From Entomortierella parvispora E1425 (Eukaryota; Fungi; Mortierellomycota): DNA of 64,000 nucleotides. The position numbers were made by a program, and so were the translations under genes. Under the pieces are notes generated by a model, which was not told the DNA's origin, did not search any database, and saw only the letters and a list, made by a program, of their open reading frames with translations. Positions 32,346 to 55,699 of this stretch are shown here, in pieces (position 1 is the first letter of the stretch; every line of letters starts with the position of its first letter). Where the stretch lies: assembly GCA_020891255.1 (NCBI GenBank), contig BQFW01000007.1:2232001-2296000 (forward strand), in the 5' to 3' direction.

Positions 32346-35300
32346 CTAGCGATAGTGCACTGGGCACGCTTTACCATGTTGCAACCAGCTGTGTATGCAG
32401 TGACGATGGTATGTGCACAAGCAGTTCAGACGCGCCACTGTACGACCTATTCAGACGCAGGCGTTAGAAAATGATGAAAGTAAAAGCAAAACAAAGCTGT
32501 TGTGGCATCTCTTTTCTTTTCTTACCTGCAACAAACTCTTCAAAGCAGATCGCACATTCTTGGTCAATCAGAGGAGAATCCGCAGGGAGTTTGTAAACTA
32601 ATAAAGCAAAGGAAAAAGAGAGGAGTTTGTTAGAGGTTGCAACAAGAAAGCAAGAAAAAAAAAAAAAGAAAAAAAAAAGAAAAAAGACATTTGCTCTTTG
32701 AGGGAGGCCTCGTCAAGACATTACCAATATATCGGACATTGTTGATGGGTCCACTGCCCTGACCAGGTTTTCCTTCAAGACAGTCTTGAACGTGAGCCTC
32801 TTGTGCAGCCTTTCCACCCTCCATTCCCGCTAAAACAGCCCCACACACAGGGCATTCGGCCATCAACGAGCTCGAACTGGCGTTTCGAACCATCGGGGAT
32901 GGATGGAGATTGGACGAGCTAGAACTCCTGGACGACGAATGCGATTGGAACTCCTGGCTATACCCGCCACTCTGAAGATAGACGCCCATAGACCCATCCA
33001 TGTTGTGACCGCTGGGGGCTGAGGACGCATGTCCACCTCCGTATTGCTGAGAAGTATGACCACGGTGAGATCGGTGGTGTTGTATCTGAGTGCTGGAGGA
33101 GGCGGATTGGGCGGCAGCAGACGAACTGCCGGACGTAGAGCCAAGGCTGTTTGATCGTGCTGGTCCAAGATGTCCGTAGCAGGAGTCACACACTCGGTAA
33201 CTTTGAAGAGTCCCGCGCCTGCTCAAAGTTTGGTGGTTAATATAGGCATCACTGGAGGTGGGGTCATACACAACCATGGAAGGATGAAGTGTGGCCCGAT
33301 GACTGGAGCATCGATCACAGACAACGTGTCCACAGCGACGACAATGATGCCTCCTGAGCCAAAGAGAGAATTTGCGGTGACATTCTCGGCATTCGATTGC
33401 CTTGTGGTCCTGTTCCCATCGTGCGTCCGCCAATGGTCCCAGTTGATGGTGTTGGTTTGAGCTGGATTGCATCGATTGCGCCCTGTTCGAGAATCCTCTA
33501 TCCTGCGCGGGTGGTATATTGTTTGTGGAGGAAGGTTGTTGCTGGAATGTGGGTACTTGAGATTCCACTGGTGAACTCGAAAACCTTGCGTCAGCACGCC
33601 CTTGCAAGGCAGGTGCTCGTACAGCATCCGTTGAGGATCCATTTGTGTTGTTTGAATAAGACTGACTCGGCTGAGCGTCAACAGTCATCTGGGCAGAAAA
33701 TTCGGTCTCAGCCGGCTGTGCAACCTGCGCTTCTACTCTTTGCGATGCAGTGTTGGTAGGTGGAGATCTAGAAATCCTCGAGAGTCGAGCCAGAGGGAAT
33801 GGATCCGCTTGCGCCCCTGCTGGCGAGGCACTGATCACTGCAACTTCTGGAGCTCCTTGGGAAGTGGAAGGGATGGGTATATTGGCTGATTCTCCATGCT
33901 CTCCTGATGCTTCCGGTGCCTCCACTTCTTCCGTAGGAGCCAGTTCGAGACCCGACATAGGAGCACTCAAGTCACTGTGGTCCGCAGTATCTTGGGTCCC
34001 GATGTCTTGAAGCTCCTCCCCTACTGGCGCCACAGAATCCTGTAGTTCTGCTTCATGAGATTCTTCTGGCAGGGGATGATCTGCAATGTCAGCGGTGGCG
34101 GGGCTCACTTCCTCTGTTTCGCCCTCCACCTCCACTCCCGCATCAATGTTGTTTTGTGCGCTAGCCAAGTTCCCTTCGCTAGAAGCCTCGTTTGTTCCCG
34201 CCTCGTGCGCCAAGGTAACATTCATGCCCTCATTGGTGTCGACGTCTGACGGCCTCGACTTTTGCAATGTTAAGCTGCGCAGTTCGCTAGAAGATCCCGA
34301 GGAGCCTTGCGGAGAAGGCGAAGCAGCTTTCAAGCGAGGAATATCCAGTTGGTCAGTGTCCTCCAGCAACGATGATTGAAGTCGAATAGACTCTGTAAGC
34401 TTCTCTGCGTGTTCCAGGTAGTCGTTGACAAGGGCAGTGGCTGCTGTTTTGGATGCCGGATCCTTGTCGACTAAGTCGCCATAATGCAAGCGTACATATT
34501 AGAGTCTGTAATATCAGCGAAAGCCAGTGATGGGTCCACGGTACTCACCCTTGATGCCCCTCAACAAAATCTGGATTGCCTGGCGATAGCGCGCAAGCTC
34601 CTGCTCCCGATCCGCGAACAGGTCTTCAGGCCTCAAGGCCAAGTTTGAACGTTTCATATAATTTCCGGCAAGTTCTTGCAAATCTTCGCTAGAGAAAGCA
34701 TCTTCCTCAGAAGGAGAAATCATATCCATTCTGCGCTTCATGACCCTGATCCATTTCCTGCGTCGAACCCAATTGCCACCCGAGCTAGGTGCAACAGAGG
34801 TCCACAGCTGGGTAGAATCCGTGAACGATTTTCCATACTGCCAGCCTTCAGAGTCCACATTAGGATCTGCGAGGTCAATGACCCATTCCGTAAGCCAGAA
34901 CCATCCTCGTTGCATGTTTGATCTCGAGCTGAATTGTCCCTGAACAGGCACTAGGGGCAAATGGACGTCTTCCTTGGTGGATGGACGTCCGTTCGGCAGA
35001 GACCAAGGCCCACCAATATCCTGCTGTGTCAAGGCATTTGCAGAGAACTTTGGGGCCATGAGTGATAAAGGGAAAGATCCTGTAGCCCTCTGATTTTCAT
35101 ATACGGCCATGAGCACAGTGTTGTGGAAGCTGAGGGGATCAAAGATTTGATCTGGAGTATGCTCGGCTATCGCAGCGAAAAGTAGAATCGAAAGAACCGT
35201 GAGAAAAATACAAAATTGAGAGACCTGGCTTAATTCACTTCAAATTTACCTTTCCACCATTGTCGTTCGCTACTCTGCAGTATATCACAAAGGTGCGCTA

Positions 35301-36435
35301 CGCTGTTAGCAGCAGCGACGTCATAGGCTGCTTCAGCAAACGAGTTCTTTAGGAGTGGGTTGGCTCTGGCATGGTTCAAAAAGTAAAGCGACATGTCAAT
35401 ATCGCCTTTCGAGGCAGCGTTGACTATTTTTGAAAAATGTTGGAAGGAGCAAAGGTTATTTTTGTGAGTTAGTTTGGGATGTGAGCAACAGCAAAGAAGA
35501 GCAGGCGATGGCATCTTCTTGCACAACACTGCATCAGCTGTGCACCATACTCAGAGGTGTATGCCCCATCTTGCTCCGGGCATTAATGTCGGCTTCTCCT
35601 TTCTCGAGTAGGACCTGAGCAATGTCGACGTATCCTCTTGAGCTGGCATTATGAAGTGCTGTCCATCCGTCTTTATCCCGTTGGTGTACATTTGCGCCTC
35701 TTTTCAGTAGAAAACACACAATGGAAAACCACCCTGAGTAGGACGCTTTTAGAAGAGCAGTCTAGAGGACAGGTTTGAACAGTAAAGAAATGAGTGCCTG
35801 TCTTCTCTCGAGGGACTATAGTGCATCTCGTTTTGCTGTTCTCGAGTAGATCAGTCCAAGGTATCAAATTGTGTGTCAGCAATTACCTCTCCTTCGCGAT
35901 CTTGCACATCCACTCCTGCCCCTGCCTGGTCAATCATAATCCTGACGATCTCTTCATGTCCACGAGAGGCCGCAAAGTGTAGAGGATTCATGCCCGTTGC
36001 AGACGAGAGGTTGTCGATTGATTCTCGGAGTTCAGGGGCCATGACAAGGATTTCTTGCACTTGGCCTGCATTGCCACTGACAGTGGCCTCGAGCAGTCTG
36101 GACCACGAGGTGTCTTCCGAGGAGCCTTCCGAGACATTTGCTCCTGCGACAATAGAAGCCCCTGAGTTGTGTTGGTGTCCAGATTCGTTCCCTGTAGGGT
36201 CAGCTGTGTCGAAGGGGTGAGCGCTGCTATGGCTGCTGTGGGCTCCGTTATCGTCCTGTGGAGTGAGGGGATCCGAGGAATTCCCAGTTCTGGTTCTCGG
36301 TTGTTCAAGAATGGCTGCAGGTGGCAGTTTAATGGTGTCCAGGTGCGAGTCTCCGTAAAGGTCGTGACTTTCGCCTGGGACAGGAGGGTGTACAAAGTCT
36401 GGAATGGCGCCAGGGGATACAACCGCAGCAATCAT
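32346..36435 (-). CDS. Pib1-like FYVE-RING E3 ligase with N-terminal ankyrin repeats, DysF/Pex24-like and MIT-like domains; ~7 exons
   Basis: Ankyrin TPLH-type repeats (GMNPLHFAASRGH, GETALLKAS, GWTALHNASSRG, GHTPLINAASKG); DysF signature (GWFWLTEWVID...EGWQYG...WVRRRKWIR); MIT-like YRQAIQILLRGIK...YLEHAEKL; canonical FYVE (WEQD, RRHHCR, RVC); CPVC...H..C; two extra 3' exons give RING CAIC...CLCTYHRHC...CPVH. ATG at 36435 is probable, not certain. Confidence 0.85.
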
Positions 36436-37346: not shown

Positions 37347-40300
37347 ATGGCTGTCATTCCGGAGGACCAACCTGGACCCAACGTCCTTCGCCACCCCAAT
37401 GACAATGGCATCCATGGTACAGATGCAAATAGCCATATCACAGCTCCTGCAGCCAACACGGCCGTGTTTGAGACTCTCCAGCCTGAAGGTGGTGATCAGC
37501 CCAAGGAGCCCCTGCTCCACCAAAATCCAACGACTGCAAATCTTTCTTCTCGGCCAGCAGAAAGGAACTGGGCCCGTGTTCGCCAAAAAGTCATCGGTGT
37601 CGACAACCCTCAGTTGAAAGAGTCCGAGTCGATCACGGCGGAAAATCCAATCCCGCTGTCAATGATACAAAAGCAGCAGCCACCACTAGCATCACTTCAA
37701 GGACAAACCAATGCAGCGAACGAGCTGCCCAAAGTGTATCCAGTCATGGAAGGAACGGGCCCTGTTTCTACGGGACTGCGAGGAGTGCTTGGATTTAGGA
37801 CCGTTGTTGTTCAAAGGACCCAGCTTCGGAAAATGGAAAAGGAGATCGAGAAGGCCCTTGCACGACGCCAGAACGATCAACTTCAGCCGCGGATGCGAAC
37901 TGCAGCAAGGATCGGAACAGGCACTCGTGGAATAATTCCTGGAGCTTCATACAATCTAATGTCGATCCCGGATCCAGTTGCAGTAGATCGCAGCTTTTTG
38001 GATGATCTGTCCGATACCTTAACGCGCTGGAGGACCTTGACCGTCGAAGTACCATGCAAGAGCGAGCTTCTTCGTACATTTTCAAAAATGCTTTTAGCAG
38101 ACAGACCTGAACCACTCTCCAGTAAGTGCATTTGAGGATTATCTGCTACTGTGCTCCGAATGCATGCGAGGAATCAGTAACTAATAGATCGTCATTCTTG
38201 CCTTTCATCCAGGGGCGGATTCCTTGGCCGTTTTGAACGTTTTTGATCAGATGCGACAAATGTATCCGCTGCAAAGTGATCAAGAGGACATGCAGGACAT
38301 CCTTTGGTGTATTAATTTGCTCTCTCCAAAATACTCTTGCAAAAAGGTACCTGGCCGAGCCCTTGATCCTTGAATATGTACTGTTACCAAGGGATAGTCT
38401 TAACACGTTCTTCTTCAATCAGGATCGGGTCGTGGCAACCATTCAGGAGCTTCTTAGTCAAAATATTTTCGCAGCCACAACACCCTTATCGCCGCGCAAT
38501 ATTCATGCGCTGTTGTCATCCCTGGTGCACTTGCTCTATGAGCAGTCAAGGTCAACACGAAAGGAGCCGCAACTACAGTTGCTGGCTACAGAAGTTATGG
38601 AGCGCATCAGGATAGGGGATCTGGGTCTTGGAAGGGAGCCACTGAAGAATGAAGAAGAGCAAACACTCGCAGCTCAGGTGGCATTCCTACGAGGACTGAT
38701 AGAATGTCTCCGTTCAAGAGATCATAATGTGGTGCATTTTGTTCTTCACGAGCTCATTCCGGTACAGCAACTACTTTTTGTCGACTTTTTGTTCATTTTG
38801 GACATGAAGAACAGCGGCCTAACAGCCCCTTTTCCATCTTCTATTTAGAACTATTGGGTAGAGCCCAGCCCCAAATTTCCTTTGGCAATGGATGGACCTA
38901 TTTCTGTTTTTGGACAGGTGGCGAGCGAGTTTATCCTTGATGCACCGACAGCTTACGCCGACGGGACTGAGCTCACAAAATCCTTAATTCTCGACATGAT
39001 CATATTCCTCCAGGAGTTTGTACCACCAGCCGGTCTGAGTGGTATTATTTCCAAGGAGACCGTACTGGCGGTAGCACGATTCATCCTTGTGGTCTTTTCA
39101 ATAGAGTTCCTGGAGACTCCAGAACTAACCCCAGTCCCCAACACCGACCAAAAGGAGGATGAAGTGAGCCCTAGAGTATCCATATCGACGGAAACGGATC
39201 AGGGGCATTTTCCAAGGACACCACCCAGGTCTCCATTGAGCCCTAAAGTTAACGGAGAAAATTTTCAAATGCACAACTTTCCCGAGAGCGCGAAAGACCC
39301 AGCAGTAAATGAGCAGTCTATCCCTGTGGTGCGACAAGCAAGGGATTACTTTGATGGCCTTTGGACGAGTGGATACCGTGGCATCGTCACTGAGCAGTTG
39401 AAAATCGAGGTACGCCACCAAGTCTTTGTTTGAATGTCCTGTACTGCCTGTGGATACCATCTAACGGGTGATTGCATGTTTTAGGCCGAGAATATTTCGT
39501 TTGCGCGTCTTGTCAATCTATACCATCGTGTAATTTTAGGATCTACACCTGCCATGGGTACTGAAATTTTGGCCGTAACTCTCAACACCTTTTTCAGTGT
39601 AAGTGTATCATATGGCCCAGTCAGTATTGATGAACAAACAGCTATTGACGAGGCTTCGTTCGCAAATGTGAATAGAAACTTGTGGCTCACCAACCATGCC
39701 CCAACGAGAGACTATCAAGGCTGCTGATTCAACTATCAACACAGCACCGTGCCGTATTCTTCAAGCCAATGGTGGCGTGCGTTGCCTCAGATTCGACACA
39801 GTTTGTAACCGATTATTTGTGTATTCTGTCCTGTCTGGAAACTCATATGGGACTGGTAGATTTGTATATGAGGGATGCTGATCTTATCAGCGTGATTATG
39901 ATGACGGACGTTGGCCCCGAGCGACCTCGACAAGACTCTCAACCTCAAGCGCTGAAATGGGGGTCCTGCACCGTTGGCCAATGCGTCATTGTGCTCGAAT
40001 TCATCTATGCGATCAAGAGACTGGCCAGGAGCGACGACAACCACGAGGTGGAGGTCGGCAAGATGTTTCTCATTGATCTGGAGCGAAAGCTTGGCCTGTA
40101 TCTGACAGCAAAGGTAACCATTGACCATTGTAGCTGAGATTCTTGATGCTAATGTATACAGGATTAACAAATAGTATCATTTGTTCTTGGATATAGGAAA
40201 AAACAATCTTGGTGCCACGACCTATCCGTGTGATGTTATGTCTAGTTTTCTACGAAATCAGGATGCTTTGCAAAACCATTCATAGGTAAGTTTTTATGGC

Positions 40301-43300
40301 GACAACGACACAGACCAAGAAGCTACTTTCCATACGAGTACTAAGTCTTCTCATTTGAAATAACCACGTAGACCTGGATGGTTACCACGGATTTTGGACT
40401 GGGCTACCAACCACAATGTACCGTCAGAATCTGCAGGATATCAAGGAAGTTCATTCGGAATATCAGACACGATGCGCCTTCGTATCAAGCATATCTATAG
40501 CAGCGTGGATAGTCTAGTAGGAGAGGTAAAGCAACATTCCACACTTTTGCTTGACAGACACTGTGGACTCGAGTCTATTAATTCTAATCGACTGATGTTG
40601 GTTGCTACTAGCGTAAAGATCTGTATTCTCTTCATATAACTGCAAGCAGCGCCCAGCCAACCAGGAATAGCTCAGGAGTGTCCCGGAAAAGGACAAATAC
40701 TCAAGTGCACGGAGGTTCTCAGCCACTAGGAGAACCATCAAGCAAAAAGTGCTATATTCAACCCAAGCGGACAAGTCGTCTCTCGGACACTCGCTTGGAT
40801 GAGACTATAGCTGTTCTCACCTTGTTAATCACAGTTCATTCAGCGATCCACGCGGACGAGTATCTGCGACTGATGGACCCTTTATGGAATCTCTACATCC
40901 TCGAATGCCGGCCCAAGATAGCAGCCTCTGCCGCCTTTCTCTTTGTCAGATGCGCCGATATCAGCCCAAAAACAATCCACAGCCTTATTTCTCGTGATCT
41001 TTTCAGGTACCAACTTTGATATTTACAATTTACAATGACCGTGGCATTTTTAATCATGTACTGACTGGTTCTTCGTTCTTCTTGACAAATAGCGATGATC
41101 CACTCAAGAGGTTGTCTGCCGTAGAACGGTTGAATGTGCTCTTTGAACATCGAAATGTCCTTCTCTCGCAGCCATATGTTATTGACCCATCGTCACGGGG
41201 ACCGTTCCGGCACGCGACTGTCCAGGTGCCTTTTGTGAGCTCTGAGGTTGGCAGCAATCGTTACACTATGGATGAGCCTCGATGGCTCACAGAGTTGAAA
41301 AATGCTGGCAACTTTCCTGAAGATATCCGCATTCGACTTCAAGAATTGGGATGGGGAGAACGGGACCAACAGGAGATGGAAATCACACGACGAGCACAAA
41401 CCCCGTTGGTTCTTTCATGGACAGGATACCTGGACGAAGATTACGAAAACAAGGCAAACTTTGGAAAAACATACACTCTCCTGCCCAGGGATCGACATGC
41501 CACAGTTTTGATCCCAGTCTTGAATGCCCTCAACCTTGGCACCATCGACCTTTTCGATGACAAAGCAATTGGAGTTCGAGCAGCGGCCAGTGACTTTTTA
41601 TGGAACTACATTCGTAACGAGCCCGTCCTTTTTGTTCGGTCATTTTTCGCCGAAATTGTTCAAGCTAGGCCAGATCGACAAAAAGAGCTCATCACCAGAC
41701 TGCACTCTCTTATCACTGGGACTTCAAAGTTGCCTCCTGCCTTTGCATTCGCCCTGTTCAATCACCTTCTTGGGCTCCTCAAATGGTACCAGAGAAACTC
41801 GAAGCCTCTCGGCATTGAGATATTGTCAACCGTACTTCCATTGCTTGCCGACGTTGTCTCGTCTACCAACGACATCGTGTACAAGGATTTCAAGAGGAAC
41901 AAAGTCGATGTGTTTTTTGCCAACCTTGGCAGGTTTTGGTTCAAGCCTAACGTCATCCCGGAATCAATGTTTCCGAATCGACTTACTGATCACGGTCATC
42001 CTCTGCCGCGTCTTCACGTTCCTCACCAACTGTTCCAAATGACGATTGTGAGCATCAATCAAATCCAGTTCTTGACCAGTTTCCTAGTCCGGTTTCCCTT
42101 GGAAACTCCTGATATCAAGGGCAATATTGGCCGATACAGTAGGATGCCTCAACTAAGCTTTAATGGAACGGCTGCTGCTGCCAAGCTCGAGGATAACCAG
42201 TACCTTCCGGATGTCTCCAAGGAGGAAATACGCTTTGTCACCCCTGGATCTCTCCTAGAGCACAGTATGGTTTCACTGTCATCCCTTCGTTCCCGAGCAT
42301 GGCTGAGCTTCGTCCTCAATCTCATCCAACGCCTGGAAAAGGAAGATGTGGAAAGATTAGAGATGATGAACATCTTCAGCGGAGTCAGTGCGATCTTGCA
42401 AGATCATGGTGACGATCTCGGAATTGTTGGGCAAGCACTGGATATCTACGTGACGGCTGCGACCCGCTTGCGACGGTTCTTTGCATCCCAAAATGGTTAT
42501 GGCCTCATATTCCCAGCCCTGTTCAAGATCTACTGTGATTCTGGAACAATTCGGGTGGTCCGAGAGACGATCGACGCGGCGTATTACCGGTTCTATATGC
42601 TTCACCAAGAGGCTTTTGTTCTCCAAAGTCTGGGTGCCATTGTTCCCCTGATGCTGCGATCTATGACCAGCGGGCAATCAGAGATTATGACGCGCAAGCT
42701 CTTTTGCTTCTTGGAGGCCCTCGATCAGCCAACAACAACCTTCCACTCCAAGTCTTTGGGGGTCCAGTCATTGTCAGAGCCTTTCTACGAGAGCAGTCCT
42801 TACGGTGGCCCTCAGCTCGAGATACCCCAATGGATAGCATCTCTTATCTCCAAGGATTCAAAAGTGTTCCAAAGCAGCAACCTCCTCCAGAAGCTGGAGT
42901 TCAGTTTGGCCGACTCTATCAAACTGTTTCTTGCAGTCGTTGCGTACGATCCAGGGTCATTGCGGTCAGAGCAGTTTGTCAGGGTATTCAAGGGTATCCT
43001 TCCTCATTTCCTGGACAGAGAGCCATTCTTGACAACTTCAGCTCTGGACAGTCTCATTGAAGTGTTTGCCAGGTTTTCGCGCTCATCAAAGCCACTGGTA
43101 CCGTCTGCGTTTGTTGCCCCTCCTGTAGCACCAAGACAAATCCCTGACACGGAGGTCTCAAGGTGTGACCTGAGCCGATACACAGTCTTTCCTAGCCCTC
43201 AATCCAAGAACCAGGCCATCAAGGGCAAGACATGGGCGCAAAATGATCGTGTTGCGATAAAGCACGAGTTCATATGCCTCATCCAACACTTTTGCGATCT

Positions 43301-46300
43301 GGGAGGACAGCTAGCTGATAGTCAGCATCAACAAATGGGTGCGCTCGTAAAATCTCTTGTGAAGGACTACTCAATCTTGAAAATTCCTTGCACCACGGAG
43401 TGGGTGCACGACTATATCAAGAGCGTCATCATCCCTGTCAAGGATGCGTACCTAGGCAGTCGTGCCGCCCTGTACTTGGTGGCTCAATTCTCGACTGTCA
43501 TTCGGACTCATTACAAGTTTGTCGATTTTTCGGGATTCTTTGACGGCCTGCTGCTCATAGCCAAGGATGACCGCCTGTACCTCCGCAACTATGCAGATCT
43601 ATGCAACATCATGAAGGAAAAAATCGTCAGTCCGTCTCTGGCATGCGGCGTCAAGGACGAATGGGCTAATGAAAGCCCCTACATTTCCCAGGCAAGGTTC
43701 TGTGGTAGCTTGGTTGGTCTCCTACTCGCCATGATCAACAATGCAGATACGGATATGATTTCCGAGCTCGAACAAGCAGCACCAACACCCAGGATGATGG
43801 CGTACATTGTCATTCCGTTGTGTCTTCGTTTTGAGAGTAGATTTCGCTCCAATTGCCTCGATATTCTGGAGATGCAATTTTGGCTTCGAATGCTCGGCTT
43901 GACGGTCAAGGCTGCTGAGTATGACCCAGCGTCCAAAAGATCCTCACGGTCAGCCGGGCTCTTTGCTCCAGTGTTCCACGCTGCTCGGGCAACAAGAAAG
44001 CAAGTTAGTACTGAAGTGATCGCACCCATGTCACCACAGGGCCATAATACTCCTCTTGCAGGCCTGGTGACACCACAGGTGCCTACAACTCCTCATACCC
44101 CTGGTCACTTTAGGCTTCCCACCTTTAACCACAGAGACGAGCAGATGGACGGTGCCCAGGTTCAGAAGCAGTCAGAGCCAACTATGAATGCTTCTCCAGG
44201 GCTTCTCATTGACTTTATTGCGTTACGAATTATCATGGTTCGAGGTGAGCGGTATCTATCGTACCATCCTGGATGTTGGCTGGATATTTTCAACATTGTT
44301 AAGAAGTATTTTTCGGCACATGCTTTTACGGCCAGCTCCTTCTCTGGGTCCAACGCTCATGGTAACGCTCTCAGTCAGCAGAGCAGCTCTCATGGTTCGG
44401 GACCACCCTCACCAAATCCTGGCATGTCCTATCCGACAACCCCTCGAGCAGACGGCCCATTGACGCCTCAACCAAGGACGATGGGTGGATTATCCTCACC
44501 ACTCCCACTTTTGTCTCGATACTCTGGTGAAATGACCCCAGGGCTTCATTCATCTCAGAATCAGGAGTCAGTTCCGATAACAGCTCTTGGGTACATTCTT
44601 TGGTCCTTTGCAGAGACTATCCTATTCAACCGACTTCCACTCATGATAATGATGAGGCCATACTTGATGGATCAGCTGCGACAGGTCGATCGGTTGCAGT
44701 TTGGGCCAGGATCTGGAAATCCGTTCCGTTCATTCTCCGCGTCCGGTCCAAATTCGCCCGCGTTCTTTTGGCCGTCGCCTGCTTTTGGACCCTCCTCAAT
44801 GGGTGCTGGATCGTCACCTGCCACATCTCCTGTGCAGCCCAGGAATGATGGTGCTACTAGCCCCTCGATATCTGGCTCAAGCACATCAGCGCCCAATAAG
44901 GAGCAGAGAAAAGACCGACGGAAACAGTGGAAGAGCTGGAGTCAACCGTTGCATTCCATGAATGCGTTCACTGAGCTTGAAAAGCCGCTTCAAGGTCTAG
45001 GCAGCCCCATGGCGCCAAACTTGGTCACTGTCGCCCAGCAACGTCAACGAAGCTTCATGTCGGCCTCGGACCATGGAGGGAATGTTACGTCGACTCCTCG
45101 GATTTCGGTCCAAAACTCAAAGCATCACCACCGGAGCAACCGTTCTGAATCAAAAGCCGCCATTGCTTTGCCAAGGGTCCTGGTCGTACGCGCCAATAGG
45201 TGTATGGAGCACGTCAGCATGATGTTGAACCAATCTTCGGACGGTCTGACCGCTTTCTCGGAGTTCGGTGTCCCCATGTATCCTGAGAAGCGTGGCTCTT
45301 TCCCAGGGTCTTCAAGACCGACCACACTCCAGTCTGACAAGGGTGATTCATCCCAATCATTGAATCTCGATCAGCTTCATGGACCTGAGCAGCAACAGTT
45401 TCTTCAACCAGGGAAATATGAAAGGCAGCCGTCGAGTCCTGGCTTTGGCTCCATGTTTTTGGCTAGAGAGGCGGCTATTCGGTCACCCTCTGGAATAGAC
45501 AACTTTACCAGTCGTTCACAGAATTTTGGCCAATTGCAGGTTCCCAGCCCACTGTCTGAAAAACACACCCCTCGACCCGGCGTGAGCTCGGACGAAAGTA
45601 GCCAATCTGGCTCGGAGAGAGGAGGAGCTGAAGCTACGGAGCCGGCCTTTGCGATTGGAAGTCCAAGGCAGAATGCTCAAAAGCCGGAGGAATCGCAGTC
45701 CGGACCTACTACCCTTTCACCGACGTCGGCCAATGCTCCAGCCAAAACCCGAAGCATCCTCAAGCCCAGGATTATCACGACCTCGCCGCCAAAGCTTGAA
45801 TCCAGTCATCATTTCGGATCTCTTGGTGATGCTGTCCAAACGCCACTCACCCAACAGACGAAGGAGTTGCCGCCGTGGCAACGACCACTCGAAAAGACAA
45901 ACAGTCGCCAAACGGACGATGGCGTGAGCATCATTAGTGGGGGGATGGTTCAAGATAGACGTCCAAGCATCTCTTCGCAGGAAAAGGCCGACTACAAGGT
46001 GGCATGTCTGAAGGCCAGGACAAAGATCTTTTTGGAAAACATTGAAGAAGAGACGCGGGTTGTGTTAGCTTGCTTCCCAGCAGTGTTCTCAATCGGTGCC
46101 AAACCCCCGGCAATCTCGGCCATAGCCACTGCTGCCATCTCTGCCAGTCCGTTAATGCTACCTACCCAGGAAGGCTCTACAATGGCAGGAAAGAACGCTG
46201 GAGTGCCATCTTCTCTTCCTAGAGTATCGATCCAATCCAATGAGCAAGCTCGAAATAGCTCTTCGAACCTGTCTGTACCAATGATGAAGACACCGTCCAT

Positions 46301-47066
46301 TACCATCCAGGATCAATCCTTCCTGGCGCCTTCGCCAATCAATCCGCTCCCCTCGGCCCTCAATGGCGGCGAGCATCTGTTTCAATCCAACGATCGCAAA
46401 GCGGTCGAGAATTTCAAGCCCCCAATACTTGGATCTCCACCACCAGGCACTGCCAAGGAGAGGCGATCCAAGAGTGTAATCTTCCAGAATCAGCTGTCTC
46501 TAACTCCTGAAGGTGCATCTGGAGTCGGCTCAGGCTCTTTAGATCCTGGGCGCATTTCATCCTCCTCCCCAGTCTCCTCTGCTGGGAACTCTCCACCAAT
46601 GTTGGCCGTGACAGCTTCATCGCCGCCACTTCCAAAATCCCCGTTACTGGCACCAAAGAAAAAGAACAGAGGATCACTCCATCCAGGCTCAAACCTAGAT
46701 GTCAGTAGGGATCGCAGTCCTCCTTCTGTGCCAGCAGCATCCGGGATCACGACGGCAGAAGGTCCATCGACGACTGCAACTTTTACCGGTTGCCCTACCA
46801 TCAGCATTAGCCCCATGACGCCAGAGATGAGTTCAGATTCGTTCGAAGAGTCTGGCTCTGTCCCGCCAGCGCTACAACCTCTCCCGCAGACTGACCTTCC
46901 AGTGCTAAATGTTCCTCGGGTGGCCGAACCGACATTTACGGACGATACCGATATGTCAGTTGTCACGGCACCTGTTGGCTTGGGATTGAATGTGGACTCG
47001 GAGCATGCACCAACACCCACGACGGCTCCACAGCCGCCACCACCGTCACCACCACCATCGCAGTGA
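37347..47066 (+). CDS. UNC80: UNC80-like protein (~2,900 aa, roughly 9 introns), homolog of the NALCN channelosome scaffold
   Basis: ORFs splice in frame from 37347 to 47066. The helical core carries segments matching animal UNC80 as I recall it: LPPAFAFALFNHLLGL, IVYKDFK, NGYGLIFPALFKIY...RFYMLHQEAFVLQ, FSLADSIKLFLAVVAYDPGSLRSEQ. The match is from memory, not from an alignment run. Confidence 0.8.
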
Positions 47067-47787: not shown

Positions 47788-50700
47788 ATGGATCTTAATC
47801 ACGACAGGTAAAGACCGATTGCATACGCATAGCATGGAATGAAAGCAAGAGGAAAGAGCCATGCAAGCACGCATTCATGTGCTGAAGGGCGCCTGACTGA
47901 CCATTCTTACCCCCTCATTTTGCATTGAATGAATGTTAGCGCGACCGAGCGGTACTCCGAGACCCTGAACTCGGCCCTTACCTACTTCAGCACTTTGGCC
48001 CAGTCGAGCTCAGGCTGGAAGCGACTCTCGTCAGCCTCGGTGGCCTCTGTCAGATCGCCACGTAAGAAGAACACTGCGTTAGCATGGACCTCTCAAGCGC
48101 GCCTTTTATATTTGCTTTGGCCGTTCACTTTCTTTCTTTCGTCGTTGAAACTCTTTACCTGGGTGCTCTCAACTCACTTTACACTTTCCATATCATCTAA
48201 TGCCATATTGCCATTAGGCGTTGGAAGCGGGAATGGTCCCACAGGATCCCCCGGGAACAATGGTGGTGGTGGCGGTGGCGGATCATCGTCATCCTCACCA
48301 AACTCAAATCGGGCCGGTTACCGCGAAGATCCCATGACATCACTACCTGGAGGATCGGCACCGTCTTCGGCAGCCTCTGCGGCGATCGAGTCGCTCTTGC
48401 CAACCATCTCCGTGTCAAAGAGGAGTGTACCAGGAAAATCCGCTGAGATTGTCAGGGCGAGCATCATTCTGCCAGGATTGGACGAGCAGACGGATCTGGA
48501 TGACTGGAGGGCTGTCCTTGAATGCACAGGAGCTCGTAAAATTTGTAAGGAGACAGAGAGACAGAACGATCCATCAGATGAGATTCTATTTTGTTGAAAT
48601 AGCTGATGGAATTAGATCTGGAAGGAGATACTGACTATCTGAACCCCTCTCCTCGTCTCCTCCTCTCTGCAGGGGACCGCATGGTCGAGAGCTCCACTGT
48701 CATGCAGACGCTGGACGATAACACATGCATCACCAAGACTGTCTTCAAAACAACATGGCCTGCAAGGTAAAACGGGAGTTTTCCAGGCAGGATCGACACA
48801 CATGAGAGCTTGGATTCGATGTCTGCGTTCATTTCACATGCATCCTTGTGCAACCTGGTTTCGAATATCGTGGGGCAAACCCGGTTCTCTGCCATGCTTC
48901 GTTTTAACCCGAACTTTTCTCCCGTCACTCTTTGAATAGCCCCAGGGATGCACTGTTGATCGAAACGACACTTCTGGACCACAACGCTGTTCTTCATATT
49001 GCCACGTCCATCAAACCGTCCCATGATGACCCAATCTTCTTACGACCTTCGCCTCCTCACGTGCGAGCATACCTTCCTCTGGTCGCGTGGCACATTCAAT
49101 TGGTACCGGCAGACCTGGACGAGACAATGTCGTTCACCTCCTTCAATTCACTGACGACATCCCAGAACAAGCCAGTGATGCCGCGTCATTCGATTCGAGT
49201 CAGCTTTTACTATCAGATCGACATGAGAGGATGGGCAGTCAATTCCTCGGTCTCAATGCAATCGCATGTCCCGTCCTGTATCGCCAACATGTATCGTCTA
49301 CTAAGACGACAGGGTGTACCGCCGCACGTCAGTCGACACAGTCCTCGGATACAGCTTGACTTGAACGAATACGACCCGGCATCAGGAATATACGAACTGC
49401 GGTACGATGTCATTCCGCTTGATTCTGAGGATTTGAGAATGGAAAGAAAGACAGTCTCTACTACCCTGAAGAATTTCCGACTTGGAGGTTCACTTACAGA
49501 GTCAGGAGCCAACACGATCAAGGAAGCGCCTGAAAACATCCCACAGGAAATCGTTTTATCCGATGACGATGATATTGAGGATATGGACAGCGACAACGTC
49601 AACGGCGGCTCTCAGAACGGATACGTGGATGTAGAGTTGGATGGCGAGCGTTGGGGCTTTGGCAGTGATATTGTGGTCCACATCTTCATGAACGACATTG
49701 AGGATGAGGAATTTGTACGAGAGCATGTCGAATGCCTCAAGTACATGGGCCGGGATCGGTACATCCTTCGGATGAAGCATACCGGTATTGGAGAGCACCA
49801 AGGCGCTATTAATGTCAAACTGCGGATAGAAAGGATTCAGCCTCAGGTTTCAGAAAGCCCTCATTTGCAATCCCCACTTCAAAATCAGGACACCGCTTCG
49901 ATAGTGGACCCGAGCGGATTGATCGTCTCTGTCAATGGCCACGAAAAAGATATTCTGCCATTGAATCGGTCATCGATGCAGGGAAGCAGAAGAGGCACAA
50001 TGTCGCTCCAGGATCAGCTCGAGTTGAGTCAGCAGATCGTTCAAGAGGTGGATAATCAGTCAAGTCACTGGCCCACAGGTTCGGAAGGAAATGGAGTACA
50101 AGAGACAAAGGCAACATCCTCGCCGTTGTTACTCATGTCGACCTCCATGCCGACAACAATCCAAAGCTTGGGCAAAAGCAACCAAAGTATCTTGAGCAAT
50201 GGAACCAGTACAATGGCTCCAGGAAATACCAACCCAAGCAAGGTCAACTCGAGTTATAGCTACTTCAACTCTTTACTTGTGGAACCGACGACATCTTGGA
50301 AAACTGTGGCTACTCAGCGGGATGTTCATATATCCAAACTGGAATCACAAGGGCATGCACCTGGCATTGTCAAGGGTGAAGGCATCTTTGAGGACTACTC
50401 TATTTGGGATGTAAAGGCCGCACTTGATTGTATATCGTCTCGCAAGATATGTAAGTCAGGGGTCAATTGAAGGGGGGCTAAAATTGAGAATCTTTAGGAG
50501 CAACATCACGTTGACTTGGAAGACACCACTCATCCTCTCACGCTGCCATGGCTAATTAATAGGGGATAAACTGTTTGACGAGGCGCAAATGCTCCAACAG
50601 GTGACACCCAGCTCAATCCTTACCTATGTTCGATTGAAAGGATTCTGGCCTTCAAGGTTTGTGAAGCGCGTGCAATGCACTTTGGTCCTACAGACAGGAT

Positions 50701-53700
50701 TCTCAGCGTTGATTCTGACTTTTTTGCACTTGACCTTGTCTTCTTAGTCCCAAGGACATGGCGCTGATCAACACAACGTTCATAACCAAGGATGCTATAC
50801 ATTACTTTTCCACATCAGTGGATGACACCAATCTTTACCCCAGTATCCCGCCGCCAGTGTCGCCATTTGTTCGGTCAGACTTGGTCGTCTCAGGCTGGTA
50901 TTTGGAAGCCATTAAACCCAGGAGTGTAAGGATTGTGTATATCGCACAAGCAGCGCCAACAGGATGGATGGTACCGGGATCGGCTCTTGGAGCAATGACA
51001 ACTGAGATGCCGTTGTGTGTAGCAGAGATTATCAAGTATCTCGAGACATTTGGTAGTCCTCCAACACTGGTCAGCATTCGTCGAGGACGTGCTTTGGGGA
51101 TTGATTATTCTCATGAGAAATCCTCCTTCCGTCTGGAATATATCCAAGACAGCAACCCAATATTTTCGGGACATCGTGCATTACAACAACATGAACATCA
51201 ACAACAGCAGCTTCACGCCGAACGATATAGGAGGAGCACCGTGGACTTTACGGCTGGTGCATCTGCCAGTATGAACGACATTCAACAATTCTCTTCGCCA
51301 AAACTTGGTCCCACTGACAAGTTGCTGGCAGAGATTCGGCTCGATGCCAGGAACTGGGCACGGAATGGTGATTGTCAGATTACGATTGATCCTCCTCCAT
51401 CAAAAGTCACCTGCACTTGCGTCCCTCACGATGGCACTGGAATTCGCCTGCGGATTGAGCACTCGAGTGGCAGAGCCGTTCCTTCAGGTGGAAAAGTTTT
51501 AGTAATGGTCCGCAAGTCTGCAAGTCCAGGATGTGGTGTAGTTGTTAATGGCCTTGGCGTCAAGATGCCCTCTCTGGATCACCTTCAGGAATGGCACCAA
51601 AACCCACCACCTGCCAGTGCTCTGTCTCTCACCCTGTTGGCGAACGAGTCCTCCGAGCAGGCCAGCGCTGCCGACAGCGACAAGATTGATGGGGGCTCGA
51701 AGGCTAGTCAAAAATCATCTACTGGACCAAACTCTCCACATTCGTCGCTCCCAGGAACCCCTTTGAAAGTTGGCACTGGACCAAGCACCTCAGCCAATCC
51801 CTTGCAGCACGCCCAAGGAGCTATGGATCTTTTAGCAAAGATTATGTCTGATTCTGACGATGCATGGACTGTTGTCTCGGACACGAAAGGAGGGCTTCGG
51901 GTGACAAAGCGGTTCATGCCTGCAGAAATATCAGACCAGGTGCCACTCGTGAGAGGAGAAAAAGTCTTGGAAGGGTTTTCACTTGAAGAGATTGCGACAG
52001 TTATTGGGAATGTTGGAACGCGATCGAAACGTAAGACGATGTGACATAGAAAGGCAGAACATCGATTTTTGAGTCTTGTTTCGATTACTAACCCTTCTCT
52101 TGCTCTGTTTTCTTGATAGTGGACGATTTGTTTGAGTCTGGAGAGATGATTCAATCGTTCGGGGCCGGATGTGCAACTTTTCACCATATCCTCAAAGGAT
52201 ACTTTCCTCTTCCCCTCCCGTAAGTCAGAAGGAGGACTATCGGTGCCAGTTTTGCTATTGACTCCAGCCTTCAGGCGCGTATATGAAGACTGACTGACCT
52301 TTATCTAATTAATCTCCATACATAGAGCTCGAGACTTGTACTTTGTAACAGCGACGGCTTTAGTCGAGACGATTCCACGATGCCCACAAATCCTTATTGT
52401 CTCTACATCTATACCCCACCAAAACCCTACTTCAAACTCAGGATCGCCTGCTGCCCCAGGGACCCCGCCTACCAACTCCACACCAACGCCTTCTCGCCCG
52501 AAGGCTCAACTGCACCTCTCCGCATGGATCCTCGAGGGTATTGATCCTTATAGCTCCAATCACCCAATCCCGTCTACTAGAGTCACGTTCATGACGGCGC
52601 TGGATTTAGGAGGTTCTGTCCCTCAAAGGATCAGTGGACTGGTTCAAACCATGTTTCCAAAGATGATCACACAAGTGGAGAGTTACCTTCAGGCACAGGC
52701 AGCCCCTCCCATAGTTCGAATTCCAGAGCAGATGGTCATCACAGAGTCCACAGGTACGAGCTTATGTCGATGCATATCTTTGGTGTTAGCGCTATATAGG
52801 TATCACAATGACTAACTCTGCTTTCTTTTGAATTCTAGATGCAAAACTAGAGTCTGTTTCTGAAGAAAGTGGGAACGTTCTCCCGAGGCTGATACCTTGG
52901 GTAAAGCCAGCGAATCGATTGACTTCATGGGACTTCAAGATGAAGGATTCATTTTGCGAGATGATGCTGGTCTTTGATCAGTTCCAGTTGAGACCCTCTC
53001 GACTAGATCTTGCAAGAGAACGGCGTGTCAGCAGAGCGAAAAAGCTGCGGTCCAAACTGGGAAAGGATAATACCAACGATGCTGAAGCAGACACCCTTCT
53101 CCAGGATGACGACTTGTCGACGACCAAGGACGCAAAAGTAGCCCAAAGAACAGTTTTGGAAGTCATTGTGGATCTGAAGCAGTACCCGCTTGGATACAGC
53201 ATTATGACGAATATCAAAGTTGACCCAGAGTTTTTGCTGCAGCACAAACAGCAGAGGGACTCTGAACAGCGCTCGTCGATTGCAAAGTCGACTTCGACAG
53301 TCAAACTGACAGGATCCACATCGACTGCCAGCATCAGTAACCTCAGCAACCACAATAGTAGTAGCAACAACAACCTTGGATCCACACGATTTATTGGCGG
53401 CTTTGACACCAACAGCGGCAGCCATTCTGGACTGAACGAAGCAGGACAGCTTTCAGTGGACGGTGAGAACACGCCTACACTCAGGGCCTCGTCTGAGGCA
53501 GCCACCAGTGGAGCTGGAATTGCAGCCGTCTTGGGAGGCTCCACCAACATTGCGAGAGCACTTCCCTCGTCGACATCGTTGATTAGAATCTTGCCACCTC
53601 CCATTACTGTGGACGTCGTCGATATCCCCCCGGCTCCTTCGCACTCATCGTCGCTCTCGGGCGGCTCAAAGCGTCGGAAGCATTTGATCATTATTTCTGT

Positions 53701-55699
53701 CCCAGAGGCCGAAAGTAGCCAGGCCTATGCTCATCAGCAAGCGGCGCAAGGATCCAAATCCACGTCGCCTCATGTGGTTTCTGGAATTGCTGCCAAGCCT
53801 GTTGTCACGACCAGCTCCGCGAGTGGAACGACATCGACGATGTTTGCACCTGAATCGACGTTGGATCAACGGCCCTCCCGTACAAGGACACCCGTACCAG
53901 CGTCGCACGATGGAGATGCAAGTCACGAGACACCCAATCCAACATCCTCGCCTTCAGGCACCTCTTTAACATCTGGACTAAAAGGCAGAACCCCTTTGGG
54001 GGAGCCTGTCGCGATGTTGGAAACGCGCATGTTCCAATTCAGTGTCAAGATTGACCAATTGGCTCACAAGGATCTGGACCATGCCGCTATTCAAGCTAAA
54101 AGGGACACGCTTCATTCCTCATCAGACGATAAAGAGTGGTCTGGAAAGGTCATGGCGGATGGGGTCACAGTCAAGGTTCAAACAAAATGGTCGCGACAAG
54201 AACTTGGCTTCTTGGACGGTATGGTGGATGAGGATGAGAAGGAAGGGGAGGAAGAAGATAAATCCTCTCGACGCAACAGGAGGGATCCTCAACGCTCTGG
54301 TAATGTTTCAGACTCTGAGCACGGCTTGAATGAAGAGGACGACGAGACTCTCCAGCAGGCTGAACAGGACGAGATCCGAAGACGAAAGTCTGTCTCGCGT
54401 CGGAAGAGTCACCACCGGCAGCAGTTGGCAAATCTACACGAACAAGAGGAGACCCCCAACGAAAGGTTGCAGGAATCGACCGCGGCTAATGGACTTCGGG
54501 CCCTAGCCAAGACTTCTGTGACTTCTACGAATCTTCGACCAGCTGGATCCTTGTCGAGTTTTTCCAACTTTTTGATGAATGTGGGCCTGATGAAGAGTCC
54601 ACTGGGCTCCCATGAGGATCTTATTACCGCCAACTCTTCTCCTAGACCCAACCAGGCGCGAGATCGTTTCCATGAGCCAAGGGAGGAGTTGGATCAAGAT
54701 GATGATCGTACCATTCGCGCCAGCAAGAGTACTAGCCGGGGAGGTATTAGCTCTCTTCTCAGCAATGGAAATGGTAGCCTCGCCAAGAACCGGAAACAAC
54801 GGCTTGAGGGTGGCCATGACTTGGACCTGGAGAGCTTGCATGGATCGATAGTATTCAAAGATGATGAGAACGATATCAACAGTGATCATCCAGCATTGGA
54901 GGACATAACGCGCGAATCATCCACACTCATTGACTCGAATTCTCGTCGCGAATCATCAGAATGGACTCGGCAGGGCGGTAACCTCAGGAAGAGAAGAGAA
55001 AGACATGGTCTTCAAAGTGATGGGGATGTGGCCTCGCGGCCATCGCTGGAGGATACTAGGTCGACGACAGCCTACGATCGCGGTTCTGGATACGGTTCTG
55101 GAAGCAAGGCAGATGCACGACTGACGCGCCGATCACGAAGAAGGGGTAGCTCGGTTTCATTGTCCCAACACCGACAGCGGCGTACCAGCACTGCAGGCAA
55201 TGGCACCACTCGCGTTCACAGACCTGGATCAACTAATGGAGCGGACCACCCCCGGTTCATGGGTAGCCATCTCTATGCGTACTCGTTCAGAAATCTGTTT
55301 TGGTCGGCGATGGCGTGCTTTGTCTTTGGATTGATATTGAGGATATACGTGATTGGACCTTCGTTCTTCAAAACGGCTGCATCGACATCGGGTACTGGAT
55401 CCACAGCCACCTACTATTATTACTATCGTGCAGCCGGGCCCCGGGCAACTGGACCTGTAAGCTTGACCAGGTCCACAGTGTTGCTTACGGATGACTCCAA
55501 GGACAGCAGGCGACGCTCTCAAGATTATCTAGACCAACAGGGTAGCAAAGGCGGTCCTAGGAGAGGATCAGAGGACGATGATGACGGTGTAGAAGGGTCT
55601 ACATGGCCATTGGGCATCCAAGAAGTGTTTACAATTCGTCGTCTGATGGGATGGGACTATGTTCTTCTCGCGTATCCCTCACCTGCTCAAGATCCCTAG
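47788..55699 (+). CDS. Triple-START-domain lipid-transfer protein with C-terminal transmembrane helix (~2,300 aa, multi-exon)
   Basis: Three START/SRPBCC units: WKRL...RKIWDRM...WPASPRD; WKTV...RKIWDKL...WPSSPKD; WTVV...RSKLDDL...PARD, each ending in a helix (..YRLL / ..IKYL / ..ESYL). TM segment LFWSAMACFVFGLILRIYVIG. ATG at 47788 inferred from a short first exon (MDLNHD|). Confidence 0.85.

Follow-up and report, generated by a model that had tools for sequence, protein, structure and literature searches.

An UNC80 orthologue with an extended tail in the early-diverging fungus Entomortierella parvispora

In human and mouse, UNC80 forms a channelosome with NALCN, FAM155A and UNC79 (PDB 7SX3 and 7SX4, chain E; 7WJI, chain A; 7W7G, chain B). 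What would such a protein be doing in an early-diverging fungus? The question is raised by a 64,000-nucleotide stretch of the genome of Entomortierella parvispora E1425, hereafter the window, in which a preliminary description made from the sequence had placed a full-length UNC80 homologue at positions 37347-47066. Both these boundaries and the label of an early-diverging fungus proved right: the organism belongs to the Mortierellomycota, family Mortierellaceae, and spliced mapping of the NCBI hypothetical protein EMPS_05474 (2990 amino acids, aa) onto the window returned exactly these positions on the + strand, stop included (GCA_020891255.1 BQFW01000007.1:2269347-2279066), with a translation 100% identical to the database entry. 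We establish here the structure of the gene, the identity of its product and its homology to UNC80, end to end in predicted fold and by sequence from residue 933 onwards, and we discuss what the protein most likely does.

Similarity to UNC80 is directly apparent from domain searches. Scanned over its full length, the protein matches Pfam UNC80_C (PF20262) with 129.4 bits (E=1.5e-37), where the cut-off is 22.1. The UNC80 central region (PF19424) also exceeded its cut-off at residues 933-1020 (40804-41153, +), with a marginal and partial match of 25.1 bits against 22.7 that covers profile positions 497-583 of 706. No further Pfam family was found at E<=0.1 anywhere in EMPS_05474. UNC80_C is carried by all 11 full-length fungal relatives that we aligned, and the central region by 9 of the 11. 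Searching PDB chain sequences with phmmer, we found human and mouse "Protein unc-80 homolog" (7wji_A, 7sx3_E, 7w7g_B) as the sole matches (best E=3.6e-24), and the matching blocks follow each other in the same order in both proteins: fungal residues 934-1022 align with human 1570-1657, 1139-1269 with 1851-1976, 1394-1695 with 2156-2434, and 2165-2195 with 2829-2859. Such colinearity bears out the ordered UNC80 motifs that the preliminary description had noted. Profiles of the fungal family were also run against the PDB with hmmsearch. The C-terminal core profile matched UNC80 with E=7.7e-51 (next chain, 0.28) and the N-half profile matched UNC80 with E=3.8e-7 (next chain, 0.35), so that in this reciprocal type of test UNC80 was the best and only significant match. 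At the level of sequence, the similarity to UNC80 is far beyond chance.

Does the similarity extend to the fold of the protein? AlphaFold2 models were built for two halves, residues 130-1130 and 1131-2200, and both are predicted to be all-helical solenoids with disordered inserts, with a mean predicted local distance difference test score (pLDDT) of 70.0 and a predicted template modelling score (pTM) of 0.64 for the N half and of 70.7 and 0.66 for the C half. When these models were compared to the PDB by Foldseek, UNC80 chains took ranks 1-4 for the C half (E 6e-14 to 2e-11, query TM-score [TMq] 0.49-0.51) and ranks 1-3 for the N half (E 5e-8 to 1e-7, TMq 0.39-0.42), all of them from four NALCN channelosome entries (7w7g, 7sx3, 7sx4 and 7wji). 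Using VIA-align, the N-terminal helical solenoid (residues 232-1108; 38040-41417 on the + strand, introns included) was superimposed on residues 19-1892 of human UNC80 over 582 residues, with a Z of 22.5 and a root-mean-square deviation (rmsd) of 5.7, compared to a Z of 12.4 for the best unrelated chain. The C-terminal helical solenoid (residues 1131-2200; 41484-44693, +), which spans the UNC80_C matches, was superimposed on human residues 1838-2865 over 734-756 residues (Z 17.8-22.1, rmsd 4.5-5.4, 20% identity). Over both halves, Z against UNC80 chains was 15-22 and the aligned ranges were colinear. By sequence and profile in its central and C-terminal regions, and by predicted fold over both solenoid halves, EMPS_05474 is an end-to-end UNC80 orthologue, as the claim of a full-length homologue had it.

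Like human UNC80, the fungal protein is thus predicted to be a giant all-helical HEAT/armadillo (ARM) solenoid, colinear from near the N-terminus to human residue ~2865, with both Pfam UNC80 regions and ~20% identity over the C-terminal core. Unlike in human UNC80, the disordered loops differ, and the serine/proline-rich tail of the fungal protein gave no significant match to human UNC80 by phmmer. Closer relatives were found among fungi by word-index search. Orthologues are present in ~30 Mortierellaceae species, with identities that range from 50 to 82% and mostly fall between 64 and 82%; several of these orthologues are already labelled "Protein UNC80 C-terminal domain-containing protein" in UniRef. 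Outside the family, the closest homologue is a protein of 2261 aa with 33% identity from the glomeromycete Diversispora eburnea, and agaricomycete homologues are 22-25% identical, about 2260 aa long and without the long tail. The solenoid core (residues ~130-2200) is colinear with these glomeromycete and agaricomycete homologues of ~2260 aa. Published UNC80s of related early-diverging lineages in the Mucoromycota include GLOIN_2v1595062 of Rhizophagus irregularis and RO3G_00105 / KAG1050648.1 of Rhizopus delemar (PMC12412391); owing to their tail, Mortierellaceae UNC80s are 600-900 aa longer than the Mucoromycota homologues. Within the Mortierellaceae, the orthologue of Actinomortierella wolfii is much more diverged than the others: its identity is 42-50%, where the remaining aligned members reach 56-82%. 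In Mortierella sp. AD032 there are two UNC80-like entries, one of 1445 aa and one of 1241 aa that is mostly tail; these are probably one gene split over contigs and not a paralogue.

What is already known of fungal UNC80? In 2014, Ghezzi et al. dismissed fungal Unc80 matches in a study that included Mid1 of Mortierella verticillata. The preliminary description knew of no functionally characterised fungal UNC80, a premise that is now outdated. A 2024 preprint by Boucher et al. (PMC11526942) identified CNAG_01613 of Cryptococcus neoformans as Unc80 and CNAG_06362, which has a C1-type domain, as Unc79. Knockouts of unc79 and unc80 phenocopy cch1 and mid1 in tolerating FK506 and cyclosporin A, the four proteins co-purify by affinity purification-mass spectrometry, and Unc79 and Unc80 act with Cch1-Mid1 upstream of calcineurin; in a structural model that agrees with the cryo-EM structure of UNC79/UNC80, the two form an antiparallel HEAT dimer (PMC11526942). 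A later independent suppressor screen recovered Cch1, Mid1 and Unc79 again. A eukaryote-wide survey of UNC79 and UNC80 led Senatore et al. (J Gen Physiol 2025; PMC12412391) to the conclusion that the four subunits all arose early and are retained by animals, by apusomonads and by two fungal groups, the Agaricomycotina and the Mucoromycota (the latter as glomeromycetes and mucoromycetes). Apart from Chytridiomycota, every major fungal lineage has Cch1, and each of these also has Mid1; the published phylogeny and AlphaFold3 dimer models of fungal UNC79/UNC80 agree with the UNC80 assignment made here (PMC12412391). Thus, the suggestion that a Cch1-Mid1-UNC79-UNC80 complex is older than animals agrees with the literature but is not new: that the whole NALCN/Cch1 channelosome, UNC79 and UNC80 included, predates animals and survives in some fungi has already been published (PMC12412391).

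By analogy with animal cryo-EM structures and with Cryptococcus, dimerisation, channel binding and a physiological role are most likely shared by the E. parvispora protein. UNC80 would pair in antiparallel orientation with an UNC79 orthologue, and the pair would dock on the cytoplasmic face of a calcium channel made of Cch1 (NALCN-type) and Mid1 (FAM155-type). Once docked, UNC79-UNC80 may support assembly or activity of the channel and hence Ca2+ entry upstream of calcineurin. The presumed partner is therefore the Ca2+ channel Cch1, as opposed to the NALCN Na+ leak channel in animals. C. neoformans Unc80, which has a UNC80_C match and a HEAT-repeat fold as does the E. parvispora protein, provides the functional precedent; it is a basidiomycete protein and is compared here via the agaricomycete homologues (~2260 against 2990 aa). 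Altogether, EMPS_05474 is very probably the E. parvispora UNC80 orthologue, in which a cytoplasmic HEAT/armadillo solenoid of ~2000 residues precedes a disordered tail of ~790 residues, and which serves Cch1-Mid1 together with UNC79.

Could the likeness to UNC80 be explained in other ways? A generic HEAT/ARM protein would be UNC80-like only through its helical repeats, and other solenoids do appear in the structural searches, with Foldseek E-values of 1e-5 to 1e-3 and VIA-align Z of 10-16. However, these solenoids (SF3B1, CAND1, huntingtin and karyopherins) have a TMq <=0.20, an rmsd mostly >10-20 Å or short alignments, and no sequence signal, whereas UNC80 is the sole significant sequence and profile match and aligns colinearly over 580-756 residues with an rmsd of ~5 Å. 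An importin-, CAND1-, huntingtin- or SF3B1-like identity is ruled out by Pfam, by PDB sequence and profile searches and by VIA-align, leaving a generic repeat protein with a negligible chance. A decaying or mis-modelled locus that makes no functional protein is also very improbable. No RNA run is listed for the region, so the gene model is a prediction that rests on comparative evidence. Against decay or mis-modelling, the 2990-codon frame is intact and all nine introns are canonical (GT-AG, 75-91 nucleotides [nt]); retention of any one of them would bring in a stop or shift the frame. The spliced product aligns to its orthologues, distant ones too, with no gap at any of the nine junctions, and the core is conserved over ~30 species.

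Alternatively, the protein could be a true UNC80 homologue whose role in the Mortierellaceae is partly or wholly independent of Cch1-Mid1, for example a signalling scaffold acting through its expanded tail. Such a role would suit the length of the tail, which measures 790-1171 aa in Mortierellaceae whereas glomeromycete and agaricomycete homologues have 149-207 aa at this place, as well as its nine conserved islands, and fungal Cch1-Mid1 can indeed work without UNC79/UNC80 in many lineages (PMC12412391). We nevertheless find it improbable: conservation with animal UNC80 extends over the whole solenoid core, Unc80 sits in the Cch1-Mid1 complex in the sole fungus tested (PMC11526942), and UNC79 and UNC80 are restricted to the same fungal lineages, all of which have Cch1 and Mid1 (PMC12412391). 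Several points weigh against an UNC80 that serves Cch1-Mid1. Upstream of residue 933, that is over the N-terminal ~900 residues, Pfam gave no match at E<=0.1, and the N-half profile matches human UNC80 weakly and only at 1511-1658, near the C-terminal end of that half. The AlphaFold2 models rest on shallow input alignments in which one family predominates, and, with no RNA run listed, the expression and splicing of the gene are predictions. In the E. parvispora genome, read here over the 64-kb window, no locus was assigned to Cch1, Mid1 or UNC79. Finally, Cch1-Mid1 works without UNC79/UNC80 in ascomycetes (PMC12412391), and C. neoformans Cch1-Mid1 is reported, in work cited in PMC12412391, to be functional alone in vitro; the role of fungal UNC80 may thus be modulatory. 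On balance, we favour an UNC80 that acts with Cch1-Mid1 and UNC79.

The E. parvispora gene adds one more sequence to an established family and extends fungal UNC80 to the Mortierellomycotina. Neither "Mortierell-", "Lobosporangium" nor "verticillata" occurs in PMC12412391 or in its 33 supplementary files, the long ones of which may be incomplete, and in the literature searched UNC80 is paired with "Mortierell-" by Ghezzi et al. 2014 only. Since the survey is silent on Mortierellomycetes, the taxonomic extension is a small one; it adds a third Mucoromycota-type lineage and fills a sampling gap, and the presence of UNC80 in ~30 Mortierellomycotina species supports vertical inheritance in early-diverging fungi. 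Mortierellaceae are fast-growing and some are transformable. The family could be a second fungal system in which to study the effect of UNC80 on a Cch1-type channel.

What, then, is the function of the tail? The low-complexity tail (residues 2201-2990; 44694-47063, +) is specific to Mortierellaceae in the alignment of fungal UNC80s. Across 32 orthologues, its nine short islands are each at least ~80% conserved. One of them, NIEEETRVVLACFP (residues 2649-2662; 46038-46079, +), contains E2653 and F2661, which are invariant in 11 of the 11 aligned fungal UNC80s. Pattern matching further revealed sequences that resemble PxIxIT and LxVP, the two motifs by which proteins are known to dock on calcineurin. 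Three PxIxIT-like motifs were found in the E. parvispora tail, TPRISVQ (residues 2334-2340; 45093-45113, +), TPSITIQ (2733-2739; 46290-46310, +) and CPTISIS (2900-2906; 46791-46811, +). At the aligned site of the second, a PxIxIT-type pattern is present in 27 of 32 Mortierellaceae tails, 24 of which have TPSITIQ itself. LxVP-like matches in E. parvispora are LQVP (2481-2484; 45534-45545, +), with "SLTVP" or a near variant in most orthologues, LSVP (2726-2729; 46269-46280, +), located just upstream of TPSITIQ, and a third at residue 2938. The conserved LxVP sites are two, the "SLTVP"-type site at 2481 and LSVP at 2726. The longest tail is that of Actinomortierella wolfii (1171 aa), which is without the TPSITIQ site; its three PxIxIT-like motifs lie at other places in the tail.

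Are these motifs more frequent than expected from the composition of the tails? We counted matches to the pattern.P[^P]I[^P][IV][^P] and took expectations from composition-preserving shuffles. The E. parvispora tail contains 3 PxIxIT-type matches against 0.19 expected (P about 3e-4), that of A. wolfii, the most divergent orthologue, 3 against 0.17, and that of Lobosporangium 3 against 0.23. Pooled over the 32 tails, there were 80 matches against 6.1 expected, compared to 8 against 23.8 in the cores. LxVP behaved similarly, with 3 matches against 0.3 expected in the E. parvispora tail and 105 against 10 in the pooled tails; because the orthologues are related, pooled counts are not independent. 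Scrambled PxIxIT and LxVP control patterns were not enriched in the tails, and hence the excess is not a composition effect. For yeast, Boucher et al. (PMC11526942) cite a report that calcineurin feeds back on Cch1-Mid1. Together with that report, the docking-like motifs make a calcineurin-recruiting tail plausible: the Mortierellaceae Unc80 tail might be a calcineurin-docking platform that holds the phosphatase at the Cch1-Mid1 channelosome via its PxIxIT/LxVP-like motifs. We regard this as doubtful, given that the idea is post hoc and the motifs degenerate, and the motifs could instead bind another partner. If true, Ca2+ entry and the phosphatase that it activates would be tied into a built-in feedback loop. 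The literature search returned no published calcineurin docking for any UNC80, and the tail motifs are the only part of the UNC80 finding not already described. The tail also contains a conserved RRSKS sequence (residues 2790-2794; 46461-46475), inside the island at 2786-2798, TAKERRSKSVIFQ, which looks like a basophilic kinase site of the PKA or AGC type.

The gene comprises 10 exons and 9 introns over 37347-47063, followed by a TGA at 47064-47066. Spliced mapping places the exons, all on the + strand, at 37347-38121 (exon 1), 38213-38346 (exon 2), 38423-38761 (exon 3), 38849-39409 (exon 4), 39485-39598 (exon 5), 39676-40113 (exon 6), 40197-40285 (exon 7), 40372-40525 (exon 8), 40612-41006 (exon 9) and 41093-47063 (exon 10), the last of 5971 nt and ending at the TGA. 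The longest open reading frame (ORF) of the gene runs from 41016 to 47066 (2016 codons) and is preceded by six shorter ORFs on the same strand; used as a query in a word-index protein search, it retrieved EMPS_05474 at 99% identity. Residues 1-130 (37347-37736) are poorly conserved, of low complexity and apparently disordered. The Lobosporangium UNC80 model begins near the equivalent of residue 120, which leaves the true start codon in E. parvispora uncertain. The flanking genes have no relation to the channelosome: 32346-36435 (-) encodes a 1156-aa ankyrin-FYVE-RING protein and 47788-55699 (+) a 2279-aa START-repeat protein with faint START matches.

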